Part shown: positions 4,931 to 64,000 of the stretch, piece by piece | Position numbering within the stretch: position 1 is the stretch's first letter | Layout of the letters: each line of letters opens with the position of its first letter | From: Oikopleura dioica | Taxonomy: Eukaryota; Animalia; Chordata | Direction: 5' to 3' | DNA: 64,000 nucleotides | NCBI GenBank assembly: GCA_907165135.1 | Contig: OU015566.1 | Location: 2,356,001 to 2,420,000 of the forward strand | Position numbers and translations under genes: made by a program | Notes under the pieces: model-generated | What the model was told of the DNA's origin: nothing | Seen by the model: only the letters and a program-made list of their open reading frames with translations | Databases searched by the model: none

Positions 4931-6433
4931 AAAAAACAGCGCAAAACTCAATCTTTTCCTATATTTCCTAAAACATATTTTTCATGAGAAAATAGCTCTT
5001 TTATGAGCCGTTTAAACGACTCATAAACCCAGTTTTTTAAACACGCGCGTAAAATTAGTTTTCACTCGCGCATAATTTTTAAAACTCGCCGGAGACAGGA
5101 GTAATAGAATTGAAAAAAACTGATTCAAATAGATTTGGAAAATGAATGTTGAAACTGAAAAATTTGGACGTGACTTTTTTTCGCGCGCCTTTTTTTTTCT
5201 GGGGCAAGCAGGAGGGTCAGCCAAGTTCGAGAATGAACGGAGTGGCTTTCCGGCATTTCGGAGAAGATTATGGTTTGATCGAATATTTTCATTGCGTTAT
5301 TCTTACGGGGGGATTTATTAATTTTATAAGAAAAAATTAAATTCGAGAAATAATTTTATTTATCATAAGAAATTTATGATTTTTACCATATTTTTATAGT
5401 AAGAAAAAATTGGTTTGGTCAAAAAAATTAAGGGTATCATGTCATTTCTGACACCTTTATTTGGAAATTTCGAGCAATAAGTTGTTCGAAAAAAATAATT
5501 GTCGGAATTCATGACACAATATCTTTCTTTCCAGAAAAAGCACTTGACTCCGTGATTAAAAGATTAGATTGCCAATTCAGACGATTCTCAATAACGTTCT
5601 CGAACTGAACTTTTGACCCTGTTTGAGTTCATCTAACGAATAGAATGTTCGAAAAGGTTCGCTTGATTATTGATTTTTTGAAGAGTCTATTTTTTCCAAG
5701 AAGGTCGTTTCCGGTTCGAAAATGAGTTTTCATTTTGAATCTTCAATTTCCGCTCGCTAGAACGCTTTTCTAAAGAGGCCAGAAGTTGATCTCTTGAAAA
5801 TCTGTTTTGATAAGCTGCTGCTTATCTCACTCATCGTGATTGGCGGCTTTTTCGAGATGGAAAGAGCTTCCGACTTTTTAGCGGTTTTTGCGCTTTTCGG
5901 CGACTTGCGAAATTGCAAATCGACGATTCCGAGATTTTTTCTTTTTCAAGTGCGAAAATTCAAAAGATTGACCTTGAAAAGATGGTCCAAGCCCGCGAAA
6001 TTCCGCAAAATGAGTCGCCTCTGAATAGTTCTGTTCAAATATTTCAGCACTGTGAGACCCGGAAGAACATCTTGCGATAAAACAACCAAAATTTCGCGCA
6101 AAAATGTCAAAAAATGACGAAAAAAATTAAAATTTAACCAACTCGCGTATCTTTTTTTAGGTCTTACAAAAGACTGATTTAATTCACTTAACATTTCTTA
6201 GAATCTTCTTTTGCAACATTGACGCCAAATCTTTATTTATTGAAACAAGACAGCTTTTAACTGATGTTGCTTCAAGCATTAATTAATTCCAAAGCAAGGG
6301 TATTTAATGACATCCTCCTGTCTCAAATCTCGACATAAAAATCCGCTGAGAGGAATCAGCTGCGATTTACCCCTTCCAACTCGAAATAAAAAAGAGGGAC
6401 ACGAGCGATTTTATCTTCGAAAAAAAAATTGAG

Positions 6434-47611: not shown

Positions 47612-50600
47612 CTATCCACCATCATAAAAATTTCTCCATTCAGGCCATTGTTTTTTGTAGATTTTTCTGCTCAAGCCAAGCTCTTGCATAGTCATGTGCT
47701 GGCATAGCAGACTCTTCTTGCCTTGCTCAGATAGCTAAAAAGTATTTCAAAATATTAAATCATATACATAAATACCTCATAACTCTTCATTGTTACCCCT
47801 CCAACAGGGTAAGCACAATCATTATCATCTGGTGGACATATTTTTTCTCCAGCAAGACAAAACTTATTGATTGCCTTGAGTTTGCCATCAAGAATCTTCA
47901 TGTCATTTTCGAAATTTGGCGTAGAAGCAATTTTGTTCCAAAAGGTTGAGTTAAAATGTTGATATATCGCATTGTCGAATGAATTCCAGTCTCGCATTTT
48001 TTGAGCTATATATCAAACGTTTATCATAAGGGTGCATAAATTATTAAATAAAAAAATCATTACCCAAATCATCGGAGATTGTCTCTTTCTCCGATCTAGA
48101 ATTCGTGACAAAAAATAGCACATCGTCCCACTCCCAGCAAAGCTCGTTTTTAAGCAAAACCATGCTCTCCTGGAAATAGTCGGACAGCAAGACCAGATCG
48201 AATGTATGGTCGAGATACTTAATGCTGGCTTCAAGCTTTGATGTGTCGAACGAATCAACCCCGAGGTCGAAGGCAACATGATTTCGGGCGCGAACTTCAC
48301 CATATTTGTTTAAATTTCTAAGCAATGTTTGAAATAAGATTGATTTAAATAACAGTGACAAGTTCTTTCAATTAACATAATATAAAAGAATGACTTTTGG
48401 AAATTGTCAATATCTGAATTCTCGGTCAGAAAGATTACATCTGCTTACGACGGTAAATATAAGTCTTTTATAAGTTTTTTTCAAACACTCAATTAATTGC
48501 AGTGATATTGTAATAAGCGGCTGGATTGGCATAAAAGGTCTTGATATCCCCAGCTGCTTTGTAAGCATCACATTCGTGTTTAAAATAACTAAAACAGTGC
48601 ATTTTCAAAATAATCGCTATGGGTAAAAATAAGATGCTAAAAAAAGCTGACTTACGCAAAGGAACTCTCATAAAGAGACGGAATATCTCTCAAAATCAGG
48701 GCTGGCAAAATCGTGTCCCACTTTACGCCATAATTTTAAATGGGATTCAACAGTAAGCGTTCCCTTGATATTTGAAGGAGTATCCGAGCATTTACCCGAT
48801 AAGAGATTCGTGGCAGTTTCACGGCCTCGCGGCCTGATAATCCGTCAATCAACGAGGGTCATTCAAAAGACGACGGGGTTTGCATGGATCCGAATAGTCA
48901 AGCACAATCTCGTTCTAACAATTTTTTGGGGTCCGAACAATTTTTTAAAGTGCAATCAGTTGGGCACCTTTTTGCCAGCCCCGATCAGAATCGTTATTCG
49001 TTTTGCACCCTTGAAAGTTTTGTATAATTTCGGCGATGCTCGGAGATGATTCGCGATAATCATTGGTTTTTCTCCATCAGGGAATTCCTTTATCATCGAT
49101 TCTTCGAATGGTTTTGGGTAATAAAACGCATTACCATTGCTTTTTGGCATGGCAATTTTTAAATCATGCTTCAATCTAGAAAATGAGAATTCACTTGTCC
49201 TGTCCAGAATTGTACATTTGAAATTATTTTCGGCTCATCCTGACTATGTCGTGAATGTCGTGAATTTCATCAATGTCGTGGCAAAAAAAGGAAAAAAAAT
49301 CCTGTTCTAGAAAAAACAACACATTAATCGGATTATTGAAAATAGCTTTTTTTTCTACCGATTAACTGATAATAAACAGAAAAAACATATAAACAAGAGA
49401 TTAAGAAGCGCTACGCACAGTTTCTGGTAGACAGTTTGCGACAGTCTTCGCAGTTTGGTAAAACTCCTTGATCAGAGTGGTAAAACATCTATTTCTTCGC
49501 CTCCTACTGTTCTGCACAATCACGATGATACTCATTTCTAGAGAAAATTCAATTTCAGATTTGCAATTTTCGCCACGACATTCACGACTTTCACAACAAA
49601 GTCAGGGAGTTCCTTATTTTCTCATAGCGAAGATAGCGGAGCTGACCTGATAATTAAGCGGAGCGTAGCGGAGCTGACCAAAAAAATTACCCCATTGCGG
49701 AGCGGAGCTGACTCAATTTTTCCCCGTAGCTAAGCGTAGCGTAGCGGACCTATTTTTCGTTCCTCCGTAGCGGAGCTAACCAGAAAAATTTTCCCGTAGC
49801 GGAGCGGGGCTCGCCGGAATTTTGCCGAAGATAGCTTAGATAAGCTGAAAAAGCTGAGAAAGGCTTAGGACGTTATTAACGCTGACTGAGGACTTATTTT
49901 ACAAAAAAAGCACTACTTTACACAGAAAAATGCCTTTTACTACACAGTGCCTTGTTTTTCACGAATGACAGCTTCATTTTACATAGTTATGATAAGAAAT
50001 TTATTAAGCTAAGCGTAGCGGAGCTAACTAAATTTTTTTTTCTCCCAAAGCTTAGCATAGCGGAGCTTGCCGTCGATGATTATTACCCATATCTAAATAT
50101 GATATTTTGAAGAGTCGAGGAGGCGGTTTTGTGTGTTTTCACGTAAACGACTTTCTTCATTGGGCAACATTTATTCCATTGTTCACTTTTTCCTACTTGA
50201 ATCTGTATTATATCTTTGTCGTCTTGATTACATTCGTAGAATACACTTAAGGGGGTAGAAACAGCTTTCTCGATTTTCGACTGTCGCTATAAAAAACAAA
50301 ATCCTAGATTTATTTATGATAACGAAATTTCCTTAAAAAATGCTTCTAGAATAGGGGTTAACTCGATATATTCGAGGTTGAAAATTAACTAAAATCGGGA
50401 GTTTTCAAGAGATGAGTTGCTTCTGAGCCAACTTACTCAAAAATCTGTTGACTTAAACCAATTTCGAGGGAGATGTTCTTAGACCTAAGATGGATCTGTC
50501 TATACGTGTAGAGAAAATTTGGTACAGTTGGTTGCGCAGGTAGTTGCCCCTTGGCAATTGCCGCTTTGGTTGCCCCTTCGCCCGCGCTTTTTCTATTGTT

Positions 50601-50873
50601 TCTTTCTAGACTTTTTTAGACGCTTTTTAGGGGGCAACTACCTGCGCAACCCACTGTAATCTAAAGTTCTCTTATCTGTAGCGCCAGTCAAAAACCGCCT
50701 TTTTTCGAAAAAAGCTGTTTCTACCACCTTAATATAGAATCATTACATGATTTTTGCCTCCGACTGCAGTTTTGATCATTTTAGCCCTATAATTTAGTTT
50801 GTTACCTCAGATTGTACATTGAAACCATTATCATTAAAATTGATATAAGAAGAAACGAGCTGTCGCGCAGCAT
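47612..50873 (-). CDS. Galactose-3-O-sulfotransferase family protein
   Basis: Type II anchor; VVYVKTHKTASSTLQNIIFRYG|LKHDLKIAMP; FYYPKPF; IIANHLR; FDLVLLSDYFQESMVLLKNELCW; RDWNSFDNAIYQHFNSTFW. Confidence 0.9.
49239..49606. mobile_element. Inverted-repeat element inside a Gal3ST intron; TSD not found
   Basis: CCTGACT.TGT.GTGAA.GTCGTGAAT...TGTCGTGGC at the left, inverted at the right. Confidence 0.5.
49630..50070. repeat. Cluster of (T)AGCGGAGC repeats, probably hAT-type subterminal repeats
   Basis: About ten AGCGGAGC/GTAGCG motifs; similar GAGCGGAGTGG motifs occur in the element at 62393-63299. Confidence 0.55.
50251..50728. mobile_element. Kolobok-type MITE family A, copy 2 (candidate TE-derived intron)
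   Basis: TTAA at 50247-50250 and 50729-50732; family A TIR; minus-strand 5' end reads AG|GTGGTAG. Confidence 0.9.
50525..50656. mobile_element. Tc1/mariner-type MITE nested in family A copy 2
   Basis: TA TSD; TIR CAGT.GGTTGCGCAGGTAGTTGCCCC. Confidence 0.88.
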
Positions 50874-54991: not shown

Positions 54992-57835
54992 ATGTCTTAC
55001 TTTAGAAGCGTTCCATTTTTGAATATTTTTTTCTTGATTCTATTTATTCTGTCATATAATAACGTTTTTTTGAAAATTGAGCAAAATTATGATGTCCATA
55101 ATCATAGAGAGGATAGAATCAAGAATATCCATGATGAAAAGAAGCTTAAGTTTTTCGTCGATCACGGGACTTTTGATCCAGCATCTACAAATACGACACC
55201 CTATGAGATCCTCTCTTCACCGAATGGGAGTTTAAAGGACATCGACATTATGTTCGGTTTGAAAACTGTTTTACAGAATCGTAATATGAGAGACAAAATT
55301 CGAAAGTCCTTTGGCAATCCCGAATTATACCGAGAAAAATACAAAGTTAAATTTGTTTTTCTACTCGGAAAAAAGGATGAAACCGATGAAAATTTTATCC
55401 TCGACGAGCAATATCTCTTCGACGACATTCTTTATGGAAATTTCCAAGATTCCTACTGGAACTTGACGTACAAGGAGATTATGTTCTACACTTGGACGGA
55501 GCAAAAGGCGCCAAATGTCAAATTTGTCTATCGAGGCGACGATGATAATTTTTTGAACCCGCTTGGATTGATGAAATTTTTCGACGAGCATTGGAGCCAA
55601 GCCGACGCAGAACCAGCTTTGTGGGGTGGAATAATGAGAGAAAATGATTCGTTGCTTGGTCAAGGAATGACAGTGGAAGAAATAAGAAAAGACAGAAAAG
55701 CTGATATGTAAGTCAAAAGACATAAGATCTCATTCAAAAGTCTTTTTTCTTCTTATGTTGTTTTCCGCCATTTATCAATTCAAGTCAATTTCTTAGGTGG
55801 CCAGGATGGACGTTCCCCCCATATCCTGCTGGTTCGGGTCAAATCATTAACAGAAACGCTTTATTCGTCTTAGGAAGTCAGATGCAGCATACTCCAATAA
55901 CTTCGATTGATGATGCCTTTGTTGGAATCTGTATGCTGTACGCTGGCTTCGAACACAGGCTCTTCAATCACGACGGTTTCATCTACTGGGGAATTGGAGA
56001 CAATGATAACATTTGCTCTGTGGTTAAATCTATAAGCATCCATTATCCGAAGTTTGATTATGAGTGCATGATCAATAGAATAAATTTTTATGCTGATAGA
56101 TGTGACCGTCAAGACAAATTAGAAATTTCCGCTTCTTGCAATTGGTATGACATGAGTTTCTCCCCGCCGAATATCGACGGACCGATGTACCAACGGTGCG
56201 GCCTTCGATTCAATAACAGCAGATGTAGCACCAACAGGCTCCTGGATCGACATTTTAAAACGAATTATAATGAGTTAATTTTCTTTCTCTATCGAGAAAA
56301 AAAGACGAGCGTACTGATACAGACATTTTTGAACAGCTTTAATAACTTTTACTTTAATCTCTATCTAACAAAAATGAAATAAGATTTCTTAATTAAATAA
56401 GAGATAATATTCTTATTCCTAATGGAGAGCCAAAAACAGAGATGATTGGGCTATTCGAAAACCCGAAAATGGTCCATGTTGCAGCACGAATGGCTACTGT
56501 GTGTCAACAAAATGGGATTGCTCGTGCCCAGATTGCGTGGATTTTCTTGAACTTGAAAATTGTAAGAGAATTTACACTTTTTCTGAAAGCTCATTCGAGA
56601 ACACTTAAGGGTATGGTACGCGCGGAGGCCCAAAGCAGAGGCAATCTCCTCCGGCCCTTTCAATGCTGGGAAGGTGTACTACAGCTCAAAATAAAGTTCT
56701 ATCCTTGATTCTGATTTACACAAGATTTTTTAAATCCAAACAAAAAAGTCACGTGCAGATGGCTCAAAATTGTCGTCTCAGTCAAAAAGCGCGAAATAAG
56801 CCTATATTCATAGGAGATCTCCTCTGAAGTTACCTTAGGAAACCCCGCCGATTCTGTTTTATAGTGACGTTTAGACCCTCATCATTAATATGACACGAGC
56901 TTTTTTTGATTCGTCAATATTTCTTATGAAAAAATTTCAAGAGTAGAAAGATACTCATTTTTCGGCTCTTTGGCCCCGTGAATCGCCCCCAGGGCATTTC
57001 CCAAAAGGCGCTGTTTTCATTGCAAATAAATGCCGTAAGCATAAGCTTTCCAAAAAGGTATCATAACCAGATTCATAAGGCACCACAAGAAAACGACTCA
57101 AAGTTGTCAAAATTTTAGAATTTGTGCCTTTTACACATAATGCACTATTTTTCTCCACTTTCAATTGGAATTTAAGGGAAAATGGGCGAAGAAAGCGCAA
57201 AACTCCAAAAGAGTTTTTTGTCTCAAATTTTACGGAGAGTCCAAAAAACTTACCAAGAGAAAATTTGAAACTTGACCCTGTGCGAGTTCCATACCCTTTA
57301 TTTAAACTAAAATTTGTGGAGCAACGTTAATTTTCATTTGAAGATAAAAATGAAGTTGTCGATCATGAGAAGGATGTCACATGCTGTTCATTGGTTCGAG
57401 TTCATACGAAAATGCTTTTTAGGTTCAGAGTTATCAGTAAAATGAATAATATATCTAAGTTTGCTGAATTATCACTGCACATTTATTCAAGATTATTGCA
57501 GTTTGACCCCCAAAAAGATAATCCTAACTCCCTGTAGAGGTATTTACCGAAAAATCATAATCGATGGAGAAGAAGCTCAATACGTCTCTCAAGAGGTTTC
57601 GAAAGAAAAACCTATTTTCAAGCTCGTTTTTGGGAAATTCAGCTCGGGGGAATCGGGTTGGCATATTTTGACAGTTCAAAATGACGCATACATTCCATTC
57701 CATGCTTTTGGAGAATCAACTAGCAAGACAAACTGCCCAAAAAAGCTGATCGGTTATGGACCTTACGTTGGAGAAGAAGCGGACGTTTATTGTTATCACG
57801 ACAAATACGACTATTTGTCGATAGCGGGATTATGA
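54992..57835 (+). CDS. GT31 (B3GALT-like) glycosyltransferase with C-terminal hevein-like and unknown Cys domains
   Basis: VKFVFLLG, DDILYGNFQDSYWNLTYKE, YRGDDD, WPGWTFPPYPAGSG, IDDAFVGIC; then NGPCCSTNGYCVSTKWDCSCPDCVD and TCCSLVRVHTKMLFR|GIY; the link near 56200-56420 is inferred. Confidence 0.75.
56609..57296. mobile_element. Kolobok-type element G (intronic)
   Basis: TTAA|GGGTATGGTACGCGC ... GCGAGTTCCATACCC|TTTA. Confidence 0.6.
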
Positions 57836-58600
57836 TCAATTAAAAACCATCTTATTCTTTTAACACAGAATCTTTTTATCATATATATCTACTATATTCC
57901 GAAGTTAAAACCGAATCCTTTTTGTTTTAAATTTATGACCGCATTTTAAGAATAAATAAATATTCTTTTGTTGACTGAAAAACTTTTTTTCTGTGAACCT
58001 AGGCCAATGTAAAAAATGAGGTTGATCTTTTGTTTCGGCATCTTTCCGAACTTTAAAAATGTTTGCTATTAATGTTTCTAAATTCATGATAAGCGCAAAA
58101 AATGCTTTCGAATGATGTATATAACTCCCATGTGATTGCGTCCTCACCCTCATTTTCCTATAGAAAAGATATAGTCCGGACAAACAATTTGCACTATTTG
58201 GTGCATTTAAGGGCTTGCAATTACACGGATTAAAGAGGAAATCCCCGAAAACAAATCAGTATAATTGCGAGCCCTGACTGTATTATAGGCTATAATTTAT
58301 ACCAGATTTTTCCATGGGTTGTTCAAAGCTTCGACTTCCACCCCCCTGAGATATCTTCCAGGTGTTGCGCTCCATAAATTTCTGGTATCATGTGGCTAAT
58401 CGCAAATTAATCAGTCCACTTTGCTCTCACATTGAGCTTCCCTCCGCGAGTTCGTTCGAACTCTTTTCGGAGGACCTCTCTTTGCGCCTTCATGCGGTTA
58501 ATGCTGACTTAAAACTTGCTTGACCTCCGATCCTATATTATGCATTGATCATCGTTGTCTCTACCAAAAGATATATTTATTTTTTGTAGCAGGATAATTT

Positions 58601-61479
58601 TCAGTAAGGATTATTGAGTATTCCATGGAAACAGACGATTTCTCCTCCAGTTCCTTCTAATTTCGTCGGCGGAGGACATTTTTCGTTGCCGGAATCTCTC
58701 GCCCAAGCATACAAACCTCTTCCGTAGTAAGCAGCATAATTATCTCCAAAAAGGATCGATGCGTACCACATTTTCCCTGCCCCGAGATCACCAAATTGTA
58801 TTCGCGCTTTCGCAATTTTTTCTACTTTTCTTGCAGATTGATAGACAATCGATCCATTGATACTCGCCCGAAGATAAATACCCCTATGAAGCATGTCAGT
58901 GTTAATGACTTTGATCATCGGGCAGCAGGATTTTCCAGTCACGTGGTTTTCAAAATATCGTTGATTTCTCGCAACTTTTTTCGCGTCGGAGCATTTTCGA
59001 CAATCGCAGTCCCATCTTCGCGCGACACAGTACCCTGCAGGGCTACAACATGACCCGTTTGTCATCAATTCGATCGGCTCATCTAACTCGGGCTTGGCGA
59101 GTGTGGCATATTTCGGTCCTCTGAAAATTGGGACTTCCAGACTGCTTGTATACCAATTCTTAAGAGAGTAGATATCAAGATCGCCTTTTCAAGCTGATTT
59201 ATCTTATCAAGAGAAAAATTCTTTAAGGACCCCCGGTCAACAATTTACCTAAAAATCGAAAATTTCAAAATGCCATATTTTGGCTTCTTAGTGTGCCTGG
59301 AAGTTCAATTCATCATAAAAACTTGTTCGGACCACATTTTGACCAAGAAAAATTTTAGCAAAATTGGGACTCTTTCGTCATTTTTCGTCAAAAGTCCGAT
59401 TTTCAAACTCGATTTAGAGGTTGTTAGAGTCGAGATAGACCCCCAAAAAATGAAGCCTCAAAATCGTTTTTTGACCCGTATAATCAATTTCCGGGGTCAA
59501 AATTTTGAAATTCCGAAAATAGATTTTTCGTAAATTGTTGACGAAGGGGTCCTTAACTATAAATTTAGACTATAATCACTATATTATAAATTATAATTAG
59601 AATTCGATCAAAATTGTTTTTGGATGATTTTGAAAAGATCTGCCGCAAATTATCGCTTCTTTATGTCTACTCCCTTAAGGGGGTGGTGGTCGAGACTAAG
59701 ACTTTTTTCAACCTAAAAAACTCTAATTTTTTCAAAAATTTTTTTTTCTATTATTGAAAATAAGTTGAAAAGGGTTCAATTTATGTGGGCGGCTATGTTT
59801 GAAAAAAATATTTTTTCGAAAAAATTGTGAAAAATTCCTTCAAAGTAGAGCCATCTCTTGACCTAAAAAACTCTATCCCCTTATCATTTTTCTCAAAATA
59901 AAACTACACGGGAGGAAAGTTTGAACCCTTTAGCGTGTGGGCGGCTTAGTTTAACAAAGTTTACTTCGTTAGAAAAATAACTAGTAATTGAATGAAAACA
60001 TATTGTTTTCTGAAAAATCGTCATTTTCACTCATTTTTTCAATGAAATTTTGGAAAACATCACAATAATCATAATTTCTTGAATTTTAATAATTAAAATA
60101 TGGCTAATTAACATTAGTTAGCAATAAAATATCAATTTTGAGTTGGTTTAAGTGCGAAAAACGCGTTACAAAATTCCCGAAAATGGCGATTTTATAGCAT
60201 AAAATCGAAAATTTTCTTAAGGAAAGTTGGTCCAATCAAAAAAGCTAGGGACCAAAAATGCTCCTTTTTTATCAAGGAATCTAAAAATAATATCAAAATT
60301 TTAAAAAGTCGAAAAAAATTTTCTTGACCACCACCCCCTTAAAGAAGCAAGATGGTTGCGATCGAATGTTTGGGTTTTCTTTGCATTCGCTCGCGTATTT
60401 GAAAACAGTGTCAAGCATGCACTCGTAGTCGAACTTTGCATAATGCAAAGTGATGCCATTGACCAGTTTGCAAATCGGCGTATTATCTTCTATCGGAAAC
60501 GCGAGAAATCGATCATCGTGGAAAATTCGATGCTCTAAATCCATTTTCTTGAAGACGATTCCTTCAAAGACATCATCAATAATTATGAATGGGATAAGCT
60601 GCATTTGACTCTGGAGCATGAAGAGTGCTTTTCGGTTCAGAAATCCACCTGATCCAGAAACCCACGCTGGATACTTTGGATGCGGCCACCTTTTTAAGGG
60701 TGTCAACTGTCTTAATGAAAAATATTCTCAATAGTTAATTATTTTATAATTTATAAAGTAAAATAACCACTAAAAATTTTCAAAAGAGCCCTTTCTGACA
60801 AAAATTGATACCCTTAAATTTTGTCTCTGAACTCTTGTTTCGTAATCGTTGAGTCATATCCACTGCCAAATTTCATTCCCCACATTGCCGCCTCATCGTC
60901 AGCGAGGTCCCATTTTTCGTCGAAAAACTCCAATATTTTAAGCGGATTCAGAAAAGTGTCATCATCGCCGCGATAGACAAATTTGACATTTGGTGCGTTT
61001 TGCTTCGTCCAAGAGAAGAACATTTGCTCCTTGACTGTCAAGTTCCAGTAGTTTTCCTTGAACTCGCCATACAAAATATCATCGTGGAGTTGTAGCTCTT
61101 CAAGAATTTCCAGATTTTCATCCCTTTCTCTTTGACCGAGGAGAAAGACAAACTTGACTCTGTATTTATGCTTGTATAAATTCGCGTTTCCGAAAGATCT
61201 TCGTATGACATCTCGTCGTTGACGCTTCGTTGAAACTGTTTTTATGCCGAAAATAATGTCGATATCTTCGAGCTGTTTTTTCGGGGAGTAGAGAATTTTG
61301 TAGGGAAGAATGTTCGTTATTTGAGGGATGTAGGATCCGTTGTTGATAAAAAATTTCAGGTTCGTTTCATCTTTAGAGTCGTTTGTTCTTTTTTCTTGGA
61401 AAAAACCTCTCTGGCTTATCAGAACGAAAAAAGCTAATGAATAAATCAGAAGAAACAGAAATTTTTTTTGGGCAATCAT
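58601..61479 (-). CDS. Paralogous GT31 glycosyltransferase with the same hevein-like C-terminal extension
   Basis: Same GT31 motifs (YRGDDD, WPHPKYPAWVSGSG, IDDVFEGI, FDYECM); last exon NWY...GPKY...NGSCCSPAGYCVARRWDCDCRKCSD...SCCPMIKV...MLHRGIY. Confidence 0.8.
59164..59674. mobile_element. Kolobok-type element F
   Basis: TTAA|GAGAGTAGATAT ... ATGTCTACTCCC|TTAA. Confidence 0.8.
59227..59552. mobile_element. Kolobok-type MITE family B, nested in element F
   Basis: TTAA|GGACCCC ... GGGGTCC|TTAA; second copy at 63442-63776. Confidence 0.88.
59679..60338. mobile_element. Kolobok-type element E, inserted in the TTAA of element F
   Basis: TTAA|GGGGGTGGTGGTC.AGA TIR at both ends. Confidence 0.88.
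60698..60813. mobile_element. Kolobok-type mini element family D (intronic)
   Basis: TTAA|GGGTGTCAA ... TTGATACCC|TTAA. Confidence 0.75.
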
Positions 61480-61655
61480 TTTTTATTTCTATTTTTACCG
61501 GCGCACTCAAACGAGAATCGCCGGTTGTTTTTGCTGACTATTGCACTTGACACCGCATGTAAAATACTGCAAAAACGCAGCTAGCATCTTTTCAAAATAG
61601 CACCTCCAAGACCTAGAACTTCAACAAGAAAATATCGCTCAATACAAGAAATAAG

Positions 61656-64000
61656 ATGATAAGAGATAATTCTGTAAAATTGAGTCTCATTCTGATTATA
61701 AGTGTTCTTTTTTTCGCAATTTTGGGAAAACCATACTCGAAATTGTCTGTTTCGGAAATAAGTCCGAAGCTTGAAGAAAAGATAAATTATTTAAAAGGAA
61801 AAGAGAAAGCGACTCAATCACCACCAAACAAATTTTTTTTATCAAAAAATTGTTCTTCAAGAAATGTTCCAAATTATGAGAAGATCACTAAAGCAGGGTT
61901 CCTTTAACAAAAAACAAAAAACTAGAAATTCAAGAAATTTTGTACAAGTTTGTTTTTCGATTTTATTTCATGGGAACCCCCTATTAAAGGAAAAAGAATT
62001 CTGATACCATTCCTGGTCTGGGGTCCGAACAATCAGCTTCAAGGCTTACGAGAAGCAGTTTACATCGCCAAAGCACTAAACCGTTCACTCGCTGCGCCAA
62101 TATTCTACCCAAACTGGAATCAATGGGACAAATTGCCAACTATTCTGAACGCTTCTATGCGTCTCGACGTAGAAAGTCTTTCGAGAGTCGTCTCCTTAAT
62201 TGATCCGGCAGAAGTTTCAACTCTTTGCGATGGAAAAATCGATGCGGTTTTTTTCACAAGGAGGGTCCTGAAAACGTTTAAGGGGGTAGAAACAGCTTTC
62301 TTGATTTTGAACTCTAGCTACATAAAAGAAAACATCCGGTTTATTTATGTTAACAGAAGTTCCTCATAAATGACCTAAAAGAGGGGTCCAGCCAGGGTTC
62401 CAATTTTGCCAAAAAATTTTTGGAGTGGAGTGAAGCGATGAGTTGATAGCCCAAAAAATTTTTTGAGCGGAGTGGATGCCCAAAAATTGGTTGAGCGAGT
62501 GGAGAGGGTGAGCGGAGTGGATTCTGAGTGCATTTCGAGCGAAGTTTGAGCGATTAAAATTTTTTTTTTTGCATTACATGCACCCTACGCAGAATGCACA
62601 TAAAAAAGAGTCACGGTGCCGGATTCTCTTAGAACGATTTCATTCTCGTATTAATAGTGAATTCACAGTATTATTCTACTTATGATAGAGAAAAACCGAA
62701 AATTGGAAAAGAAAGCTGATGAATTGCAGATATGATTTGCAAAAAGAAACTTGTAAAAATCTTTATACCAAAAAATAACTGTGAGCGCGTGAAGTTGAGC
62801 TCGGCGCTGCTTCCAGGGGTCCCTTAAAGAAAAGAGGTTGAAAAAGGTCGGGCCCCCACGAGCAGATAGAAACCCAAGTCATCTTTGCACGCCGTGAGCA
62901 AGCCTTTCCTTGCTCTTTCTGAAGGATAAGGAAGGGTTTTAACGAAAAGCAGGGTTTTGATTTGAGGGTGTAGCTAATGATAAACTGCTAATCTGCCAGA
63001 AACGTGCTGTTGGAACTTCTTGGCAGCAATATTCTCTATAATAGATCAATTTGATGACTGCGTGAGCCTGAGATTTTCAATTCTAAAACTGACGAACATT
63101 CAGGTAGCCAATCAAAGCTTGATTAAAAAAGGCCCAAGATACAAAAATCCACTCCATCCACTCAAAATCCACTCCGGAGTGGATTTTAAACATTGTTGGA
63201 GTGGAGTGGAGCGAATGAAAGGATGCTAAAAATTAAGGCTGTGGAGTGGATCCACTCCGCTCAAAATCCACTCCATCGCTCAGCAAAATTGGAACCCTGG
63301 GTTCAGCTTCACAAAAATGTGAATGAAAATTGTTTTCTTATTATTTGACTCGAGATATCGAGGTTGAAAATGTGCGAAAATCGAGAATTTCGGAAAGATG
63401 GGTTGCTTCTGAGCCCCATTTCTCGAAAATTTGATTATTAAGGACCCCCCGTCAGCTTTTTTTGAAAAATCGAATTTCGGAATTTTTGAATTTTGCCCCC
63501 GGAAATGGATTCAACGGGCCAAAAAACGATTTTGACGCTTCATTTTTTGGGGGTCTATCTCGACTCTAACACCCTCAAAATCGCATTTGAAAATAAGCTT
63601 TTCACCGAAAATTGACGAATTTGCCCTTATTTTGGCAACAATATTGATTTTTCTTGGTCAAATCTTCGTCTTATCAAGTTTTTGAAGCAAGTTTAACTTA
63701 AGGACACATAAAAAACCAAAAATATGGTGTTTTTTAAAATTTCGATTTTTCGTAGGATAAAGCTGACGGGGGGTCCTTAAAACAAATTTCGAGGGAGATG
63801 TTCCTAGATCTAAGATGTTTCTATCTTAAAATGAAAAGAAAAATTGAAAATCTAAGATTTTTTTGTTTGTAGCGCCAGTTAAAAATCGCTTATTTTCGAA
63901 AAAGCTGTTTCTACCCCTGAAATAATTCAAAAGATAATTCGAGATATTTAAGAGATGGCAATTAAGAATTTCTCTAAGATTCTTGATTTTTGCCATTCAT
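61656..64000 (+). CDS. O-fucosyltransferase-like (POFUT/O-FucT) protein, 5' part; runs off the window
   Basis: Type II anchor; LVWGPNNQLQGLREAVYIAKALNRSLAAP; interrupted after IDAVFFTR by a TE-filled intron ending near 63950. Confidence 0.7.
62393..63299. mobile_element. hAT-type element nested in family A copy 3
   Basis: TIR CAGGGTTCCAATTTTGC; TSD GGT(C/T)CAGC; GGAGTGGA subterminal repeats. Confidence 0.85.
63442..63776. mobile_element. Kolobok-type MITE family B, copy 2, nested in family A copy 3
   Basis: TTAA|GGACCCCCCGTCAGC ... GCTGACGGGGGGTCC|TTAA. Confidence 0.9.

Follow-up and report, generated by a model that had tools for sequence, protein, structure and literature searches.

The 64,000-nucleotide (nt) stretch of the Oikopleura dioica genome analysed here (assembly GCA_907165135.1, contig OU015566.1, positions 2,356,001 to 2,420,000 of the forward strand) is referred to as the window, and positions are window positions unless another source is named. 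Near its end lies a minus-strand gene for a GT31 galactosyltransferase, in which a 1179-base stack of three transposon-like elements separates two stretches of coding sequence. Exon 1 (61479-60818) matches the Galactosyl_T family (PF01762, E-value 1.3e-20) and its open reading frame (ORF) terminates at a TAA (60816-60814). Exon 2 (60689-60338) encodes the end of the Galactosyl_T domain and terminates in ..SCFFK; its final TTAA, at 60342-60339, is the target site of the insertion. The last exon (59158-58601; 185 codons at 59158-58604 and a stop codon at 58603-58601) begins NWY.. and carries, at residues ~34-66, a hevein-like cysteine module (CCSPAGYC..C.C..C). A search of representative proteins with this exon gave four matches only, P0003, P0004, P0005 and P0006. 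The cysteine module aligns with the seven repeats of P0005 at 42% identity (E-value 1.2e-7), and these repeats in turn match Pfam Chitin_bind_1 (hevein) with an E-value of 1e-24. For the C-terminal ~120 residues of the exon the sole matches are P0003 and P0004, with none to a Pfam family. The GT31 family is redundant, with a paralog in the window, a duplicate of the gene elsewhere on the contig (the source of P0003), P0004, and a further GT31 gene just beyond the window.

The stack occupies 59159-60337 and consists of nothing but three elements with terminal inverted repeats (TIRs) and TTAA duplications, designated E, F and B, the last lying inside F. The inverted repeats were detected by a repeat-finding tool (I4, 26 nt, 88%; I7, 22 nt, 86%; I10, 19 nt, 89%) and the element ends were then read by script. 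On the minus strand the interval reads ..TGC TTC TTT AAG | GGGGTGGTGGTC.. to ..CTACTCTCTTAAG | AAT TGG TAT... Element E (60338-59679, 660 bp) has the TIR GGGGGTGGTGGTC(A/G)AGA, with 16/17 positions matching, and an internal duplicated unit of ~150 nt. Element F (59674-59164) measures 511 bp with B and ~185 bp without it, and has the TIRs GGGAGTAGACAT / GAGAGTAGATAT. Element B (59552-59227, 326 bp) belongs to a high-copy family with the TIR GGACCCC..GTCAACAATTTAC. One TTAA lies 5' of E (60342-60339), one is common to E and F (59678-59675), one forms the 3' duplication of the stack (59163-59160) and two surround B (59556-59553 and 59226-59223). All five copies are perfect, and the G at 59159 is host sequence. 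A preliminary description of this DNA, made from the letters alone, had taken 59159-60337 as pure transposon with B inside F, as the TIRs and TTAA flanks confirm; its limits lie one G off those given by the duplications and are equally valid as intron limits.

Copy number agrees with a transposon origin. Summed contig depth in the DNA run X25 is 5-8 over the exons, 30-190 over E and the 5' arm of F, and reaches 2300 over B, the multi-copy support for F being that of its 5' arm only. At 5 or more of its 326 sites (at least 1.5%) B departs from the majority sequence of its close relatives, and a second member of its family on the plus strand (63442-63776, 77% identical, ending alike and likewise flanked by TTAA) sits within a 1.8-kb transposon stack in the neighbouring gene. 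The termini are purine-purine (GGGGG.. in E, GGGAG../GAGAG.. in F and GGACC.. in B), the opposite of piggyBac-style CCC...GGG ends. Kolobok elements and their MITEs (miniature inverted-repeat transposable elements) show a TTAA target and purine-purine (RR) termini (PMC6004289), and in both respects the stack elements are like non-autonomous Kolobok elements such as the T2-MITEs of Xenopus (PMC6004289). The earlier label of Kolobok-type thus stands as far as these two features carry it. The B end (A)GGAC...GTCAAC also resembles, in a comparison by eye only, the XKol A3 TIR AGGACATGTCAACCCC of Xenopus (PMC6004289). In contrast to the known Kolobok superfamily, no autonomous partner of E, F and B was found in the window, in the duplicate locus described below (L001), or in two further stretches that reach beyond the end of the window (L002 and L003).

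The nesting shows that B entered F, either here or in the source copy from which F came. The preliminary description placed F first and E later, into the duplication made by F, an order that the letters do not single out, as insertion of E followed by F gives an identical sequence. Nor did E have to supply a new donor as proposed there, since F by itself provides a GG at +1 and, 3 nt inside, a GT that keeps the frame (AAG GGA|GTAGAC). Nesting was considered as a sign of selection and rejected: the exons hold ~1 TTAA each, whereas E has 7 and F has 2, so that nested hits are expected under neutrality.

The origin of the stack is revealed by L001, which was located through P0003 (87% identical) on the same 14.53-Mb record, OU015566.1, at ~2.59 Mb, 170-180 kb from the window gene. 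L001 duplicates a block, at least 3.9 kb long, that includes the GT31 gene and part of its neighbour (L001:3480-6344 against window 58572-62260), with 85-92% nucleotide identity overall and ~91% between the two copies of the GT31 gene. There exon 2 and the last exon form one uninterrupted exon, ..CFFK|NWY.., with a single TTAA (..QPSCFFKNWYASS.., or ..TTTAAGAAT.. at the site itself), and all 1179 bases are absent, to the base. This empty site, being exact, identifies the 1179 bases as inserted into coding sequence and the FFK codons as part of the original reading frame. Comparison of the two copies therefore firmly establishes insertion into a coding exon as the origin of the stack, and all three insertions are most simply read as later than the duplication. 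More distant relatives agree. The homologous site of the in-window paralog (56131-56150, plus strand) encodes A S C N W Y unbroken, with the junction at 56139/56140, and the metagenome paralog P0006 reads ..EC-FGTK-YWF.. straight across. The paralog had earlier been described as running from SC to NWY..GPMY without interruption, and the site as not having been an intron before the insertion; the first is correct, and L001 and P0006 bear out the second.

An X25 contig that joins 59158 to 60338 was considered as a polymorphic empty allele and rejected, as 24 of its 27 variant letters match L001 and assign it to the sister copy. No empty allele of the window locus was seen among the X25 contigs, and a metagenome scan for orthologous loci found no relatives. 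The last exon of L001 carries a 1-nt deletion near window 58983 that splits its ORF (L001 5393..5980 and 5977..6318); this may be a genuine frameshift or an error introduced when the duplicated region was polished.

The same gene contains an older element of this general kind. Intron 1 (60817-60690, minus strand) consists of TTAA, a 116-nt TIR element (60813-60698; ends GGGTATCAA../..TTGACACCC), TTAA and AAAG, and is thus nearly all TTAA element. The element is also present in L001 and is therefore older than the duplication, which indicates that a MITE-filled intron 1 has been tolerated in this GT31 gene since before that event. Exon 1 has two donor options. That after 60818 is the homolog of the paralog donor AT|GTAAGT, and in the window copy reads AT|TTAAGG, which is not G-initial; the other is a GT after 60833, 15 nt upstream (GA|GTTCAG), likewise in frame. 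Without the element the site would carry an in-frame TAA, so intron 1 is no simple exon insertion. In L001 the intron (L001:4872-5409) holds the same element with an extra nested element of ~390 nt (GGGGGGGGGGTCGACGAG..).

Exact removal of 60337-59159 as a GG..AG intron restores an exon of the L001 type, and GG-AG introns occur in O. dioica. Three GT donors, at 60334, 60331 and 60328, likewise keep the frame, owing to the (GGT)n period of the TIR, and would add G, GV and GVV, respectively. The two donors suggested previously, the GG and the GT 3 nt later, are thus both present, with two further in-frame GTs (60331 and 60328) beside them. At the other end, the 3' end of F, CTACTCTC, forms with the TTAA and the next G a candidate acceptor, ..CTCTCTTAAG|, with its AG at 59160-59159. 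Five out-of-frame AGs compete in the final 100 nt of the stack. The candidate donors are weak when set against the U1-type consensus, and a fold prediction places them in a stem of ~25 bp with the other TIR of E. Read-through into E adds 18 residues before a stop at 60295-60293; as polyadenylation signals E has no AATAAA and one ATTAAA (60090), which is uninformative. The stack is 24 times as long as the median O. dioica intron (49 nt, PMC8008620). Among O. dioica introns 11-12% are non-GT/AG (PMC8008620), and GA-AG introns are common, the donor being preceded by a conserved exonic AG (PMC7072748).

Expression was sought in three oligo-dT RNA runs (X4-X6, ~4.8 Gb) at 90% likeness. No read fell on any exon of the gene, and the sister copy also had zero reads, though it would have been acceptable at that likeness; the few reads that could be placed came from other loci and matched E in part. 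Public annotation of the locus calls the ORF of exon 1 only, with no model across the stack. Neither of two large protein searches, one with the last exon and one with the 195-residue junction-spanning ORF of L001 (zero matches), returned a protein spanning the junction, and an exact-protein look-up of two window ORFs found neither on record.

Constraint on the coding sequence was estimated from the ratio of nonsynonymous to synonymous divergence (dN/dS) between the window copy and L001 by the method of Nei and Gojobori. Exon 1 gave a dN/dS of 0.21 (synonymous divergence, dS, 0.28), exon 2 of 0.08 (dS 0.38) and the last exon of 0.20 (dS 0.26), with 0.17 (dS 0.29) for all exons together. The downstream exon had been described beforehand as open for 185 codons; it is so, and the dN/dS of 0.20, a check proposed at the time, marks it as a real constrained coding exon. 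These values indicate that the last exon is genuine coding sequence that has been constrained for most of the time since the duplication. If the divergence of B is taken as the age of the event, the estimated chance that an unconstrained exon of 555 nt would still be open is ~0.15-0.3, so the intact ORF does not discriminate between a young insertion that disables the gene and one that is spliced. Neither further lesions nor a relaxed dN/dS of the kind expected in a pseudogene was found, a comparison of low power if the event is young.

The neighbouring gene, on the plus strand, has a comparable history. Its ORF starts at 61950, and an exon that is continuous in L001 is interrupted in the window copy by a TTAA-element stack of 1792 nt (62261-64052, continuing beyond 64000 in L002; L002:16976-18767). 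The outer family of this stack has the ends GGGGGTAGAAACAGCTTTC, and the second copy of B is nested inside it. If 62260 is joined to 64053 the product reads ..DAVFFTR|NEGDNKETIAMEYYG.., and the borders, which lie at a CAAG repeat, are GA..AG. In comparison with L001 the gene has a dN/dS of 0.25 (dS 0.29), and the ORFs flanking the stack are intact. The public gene call here (L003:1204-9323, window-equivalent 62157-70276) is an 8.1-kb model of 496 residues that probably fuses the neighbour with the downstream GT31 gene; as a probable chimera it cannot show the intron borders. Two stacks in one duplicated block fit either relaxed selection on the block or a genome that splices such insertions.

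Two further repeats were observed nearby. Another copy of the outer family lies at 50246-50727 (TTAA|GGGGGTAGAAACAGCTTTC ... GAAAAAAGCTGTTTCTACCACC|TTAA), its ends and flanks having been checked. Just after a GT donor of the neighbouring gene, L002:19152-19610 (window-equivalent 64437-64895) is a 459-nt insertion absent from L001; a 10-nt unit is tandemly repeated at both of its ends in inverted orientation, as (GTCGCCGAAT)n and (ATTCGGCGAC)n.

Our preferred reading, to which we assign a probability of about 0.5, is that the gene at present is a disrupted or truncated copy in a redundant, lineage-specific family. Non-autonomous DNA transposons that target TTAA are stacked at a single TTAA(G) within a formerly continuous GT31 coding exon. 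As it stands the insertion breaks the frame, which would leave either a truncated enzyme without the hevein-like and C-terminal parts or a nascent pseudogene. The downstream exon would still appear intact because the insertions are young, and the ends of the transposons may permit a degree of cryptic splicing that keeps the frame. This reading draws on the exact empty site in L001, the TTAA duplications, TIRs and multi-copy depth, the lack of RNA reads in X4-X6, the exon-1-only gene call, the lack of a junction-spanning protein in the searches, the redundancy of the family, the length of the stack, the weak and base-paired donors and the competing AGs; the neighbour's stack, which lies within the same duplication, is in keeping with relaxed selection on the block. 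Several observations weigh against it. Each of the four donors within 10 nt that start with G keeps the frame, the candidate acceptor is pyrimidine-rich, and exon 2 ends in AAG, a context reported for non-canonical donors of O. dioica (PMC7072748). Apart from the stack, the 1566 nt of coding sequence contain no stop or frameshift; it is L001 that has a 1-nt deletion. The last exon (dN/dS 0.20) is about as constrained as the upstream exons (0.155), a comparison of low power for a young event, and derived amino-acid changes, polarised with outgroups, are distributed 4:2 between the window copy and L001 downstream of the stack and 6:9 upstream, which is no excess, with very low power. The RNA runs may also come from another lineage or life stage, which makes zero reads weak evidence.

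The main rival reading is that the stack is a newborn spliceosomal intron, removed in frame from the GG or one of the three GTs to the AG at 59160-59159 with the full-length protein kept, an outcome that we take seriously at somewhat under even odds. The signals for it would come from the purine-rich 5' and pyrimidine-rich 3' ends of the transposons together with TTAA followed by G, a suggestion made with similar reserve. The open, constrained last exon without an excess of derived changes speaks for it; a young disabling insertion, however, is likewise expected to leave the ORF intact and the pairwise dN/dS low. Also in its favour are the in-frame donors and the acceptor ..CTCTCTTAAG|; against it, excising a transposon with one duplication always restores the frame, and the donors are weak and predicted to be base-paired. 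The substantial share of non-GT/AG introns in the species, GA-AG types after an exonic AG among them, and the MITE insertions reported as the source of non-canonical introns in Fritillaria (Henriet et al. 2019, summarised in PMC11282704), also speak for it. So do two features of the block itself: intron 1 is nearly all TTAA element, predates the duplication and has flanking exons that both stayed constrained, and the 1792-nt stack of the neighbour, whose flanking ORFs are intact, could also be removed without loss of frame, as GA..AG. Set against this are the length of the stack, at 24 median introns, and the lack of a junction read, transcript or gene model in the X4-X6 RNA, the protein searches and the public calls. 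It is doubtful that the locus represents something broader still, namely three nested Kolobok-like MITEs excised exactly by GG-AG as one instance of a genome-wide process in which TTAA/RR MITEs at TTAAG sites gave rise to the G*-AG non-canonical introns of O. dioica.

The stack could instead be older than the duplication, an old constitutive intron that L001 lost precisely, for example by recombination with spliced cDNA. Precise loss would leave the same letters as an empty site, and L001 does read ..TTTAAGAAT.., yet this requires one event more than insertion after the duplication, and L001 retains intron 1. An insertion of that age should also have decayed: at ~0.145 substitutions per site per lineage since the duplication (dS 0.29), an estimated ~3 changes are expected in the TTAAs and ~5 in the TIRs of E, whereas the TTAAs are perfect and the TIRs match at 16/17. 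The distant paralog and P0006 are without the stack as well. We regard this history as very improbable. More improbable again, to the point of being scarcely credible, is an assembly artefact in which repeats were misplaced into the exon. The region is repeat-rich, the gene occurs in two similar copies and the assembly is Nanopore-based, but an Illumina-derived X25 contig spans the junction of exon and F (59002-59217) with no differences, and the boundaries fall exactly at the TTAA duplications.

Exon insertions that are partly spliced through cryptic sites at their ends occur with Ds/dSpm in maize and Tc1 in Caenorhabditis elegans. The stack is like them in bringing donor- and acceptor-like termini into a coding exon, so that leaky restoration of the frame is possible; those cases are mutant alleles with measured transcripts, whereas the stack is read from sequence. 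A closer relative, the larvacean Fritillaria borealis, has MITE-derived non-canonical introns (Henriet et al. 2019, as summarised in PMC11282704 and PMC13326754). TIR elements lie there at species-specific coding positions and their removal needs non-GT donors and the major spliceosome, all of which recalls the present locus. In that species splicing is shown by transcriptomes and the ends are mostly AG-AC or AG-AT, each in a single MITE, while the candidate ends here are GG-AG or GT-AG in a nested, three-element stack known from its sequence. Introners (Huff et al. 2016; Gozashti et al. 2022, PMC9860276) offer a further parallel, being non-autonomous TIR transposons with a target-site duplication in an exon, and here too one splice site could come from the duplication and its flank (TTAA then G, giving AG). 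Introners, however, are families found many times as spliced introns, and E, F and B are known here as one candidate locus. The main text of PMC9860276 has no mention of a tunicate or of Oikopleura, and the papers searched contained nothing linking new introns of O. dioica to transposons.

Both outcomes belong to known kinds of event: a duplicate gene struck by a transposon, or an intron derived from transposons like those of Fritillaria and the introners. Should the stack prove unspliced, the locus is an ordinary case of a transposon landing in a redundant gene copy. Intron turnover in O. dioica is among the highest known in animals, and about one in nine of its introns lacks GT-AG borders. 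The locus presents a filled site and its exact empty counterpart in one genome, datable by a dS of 0.29, and so lends itself to a clean, well-defined test of whether TTAA MITEs turn into introns in O. dioica.

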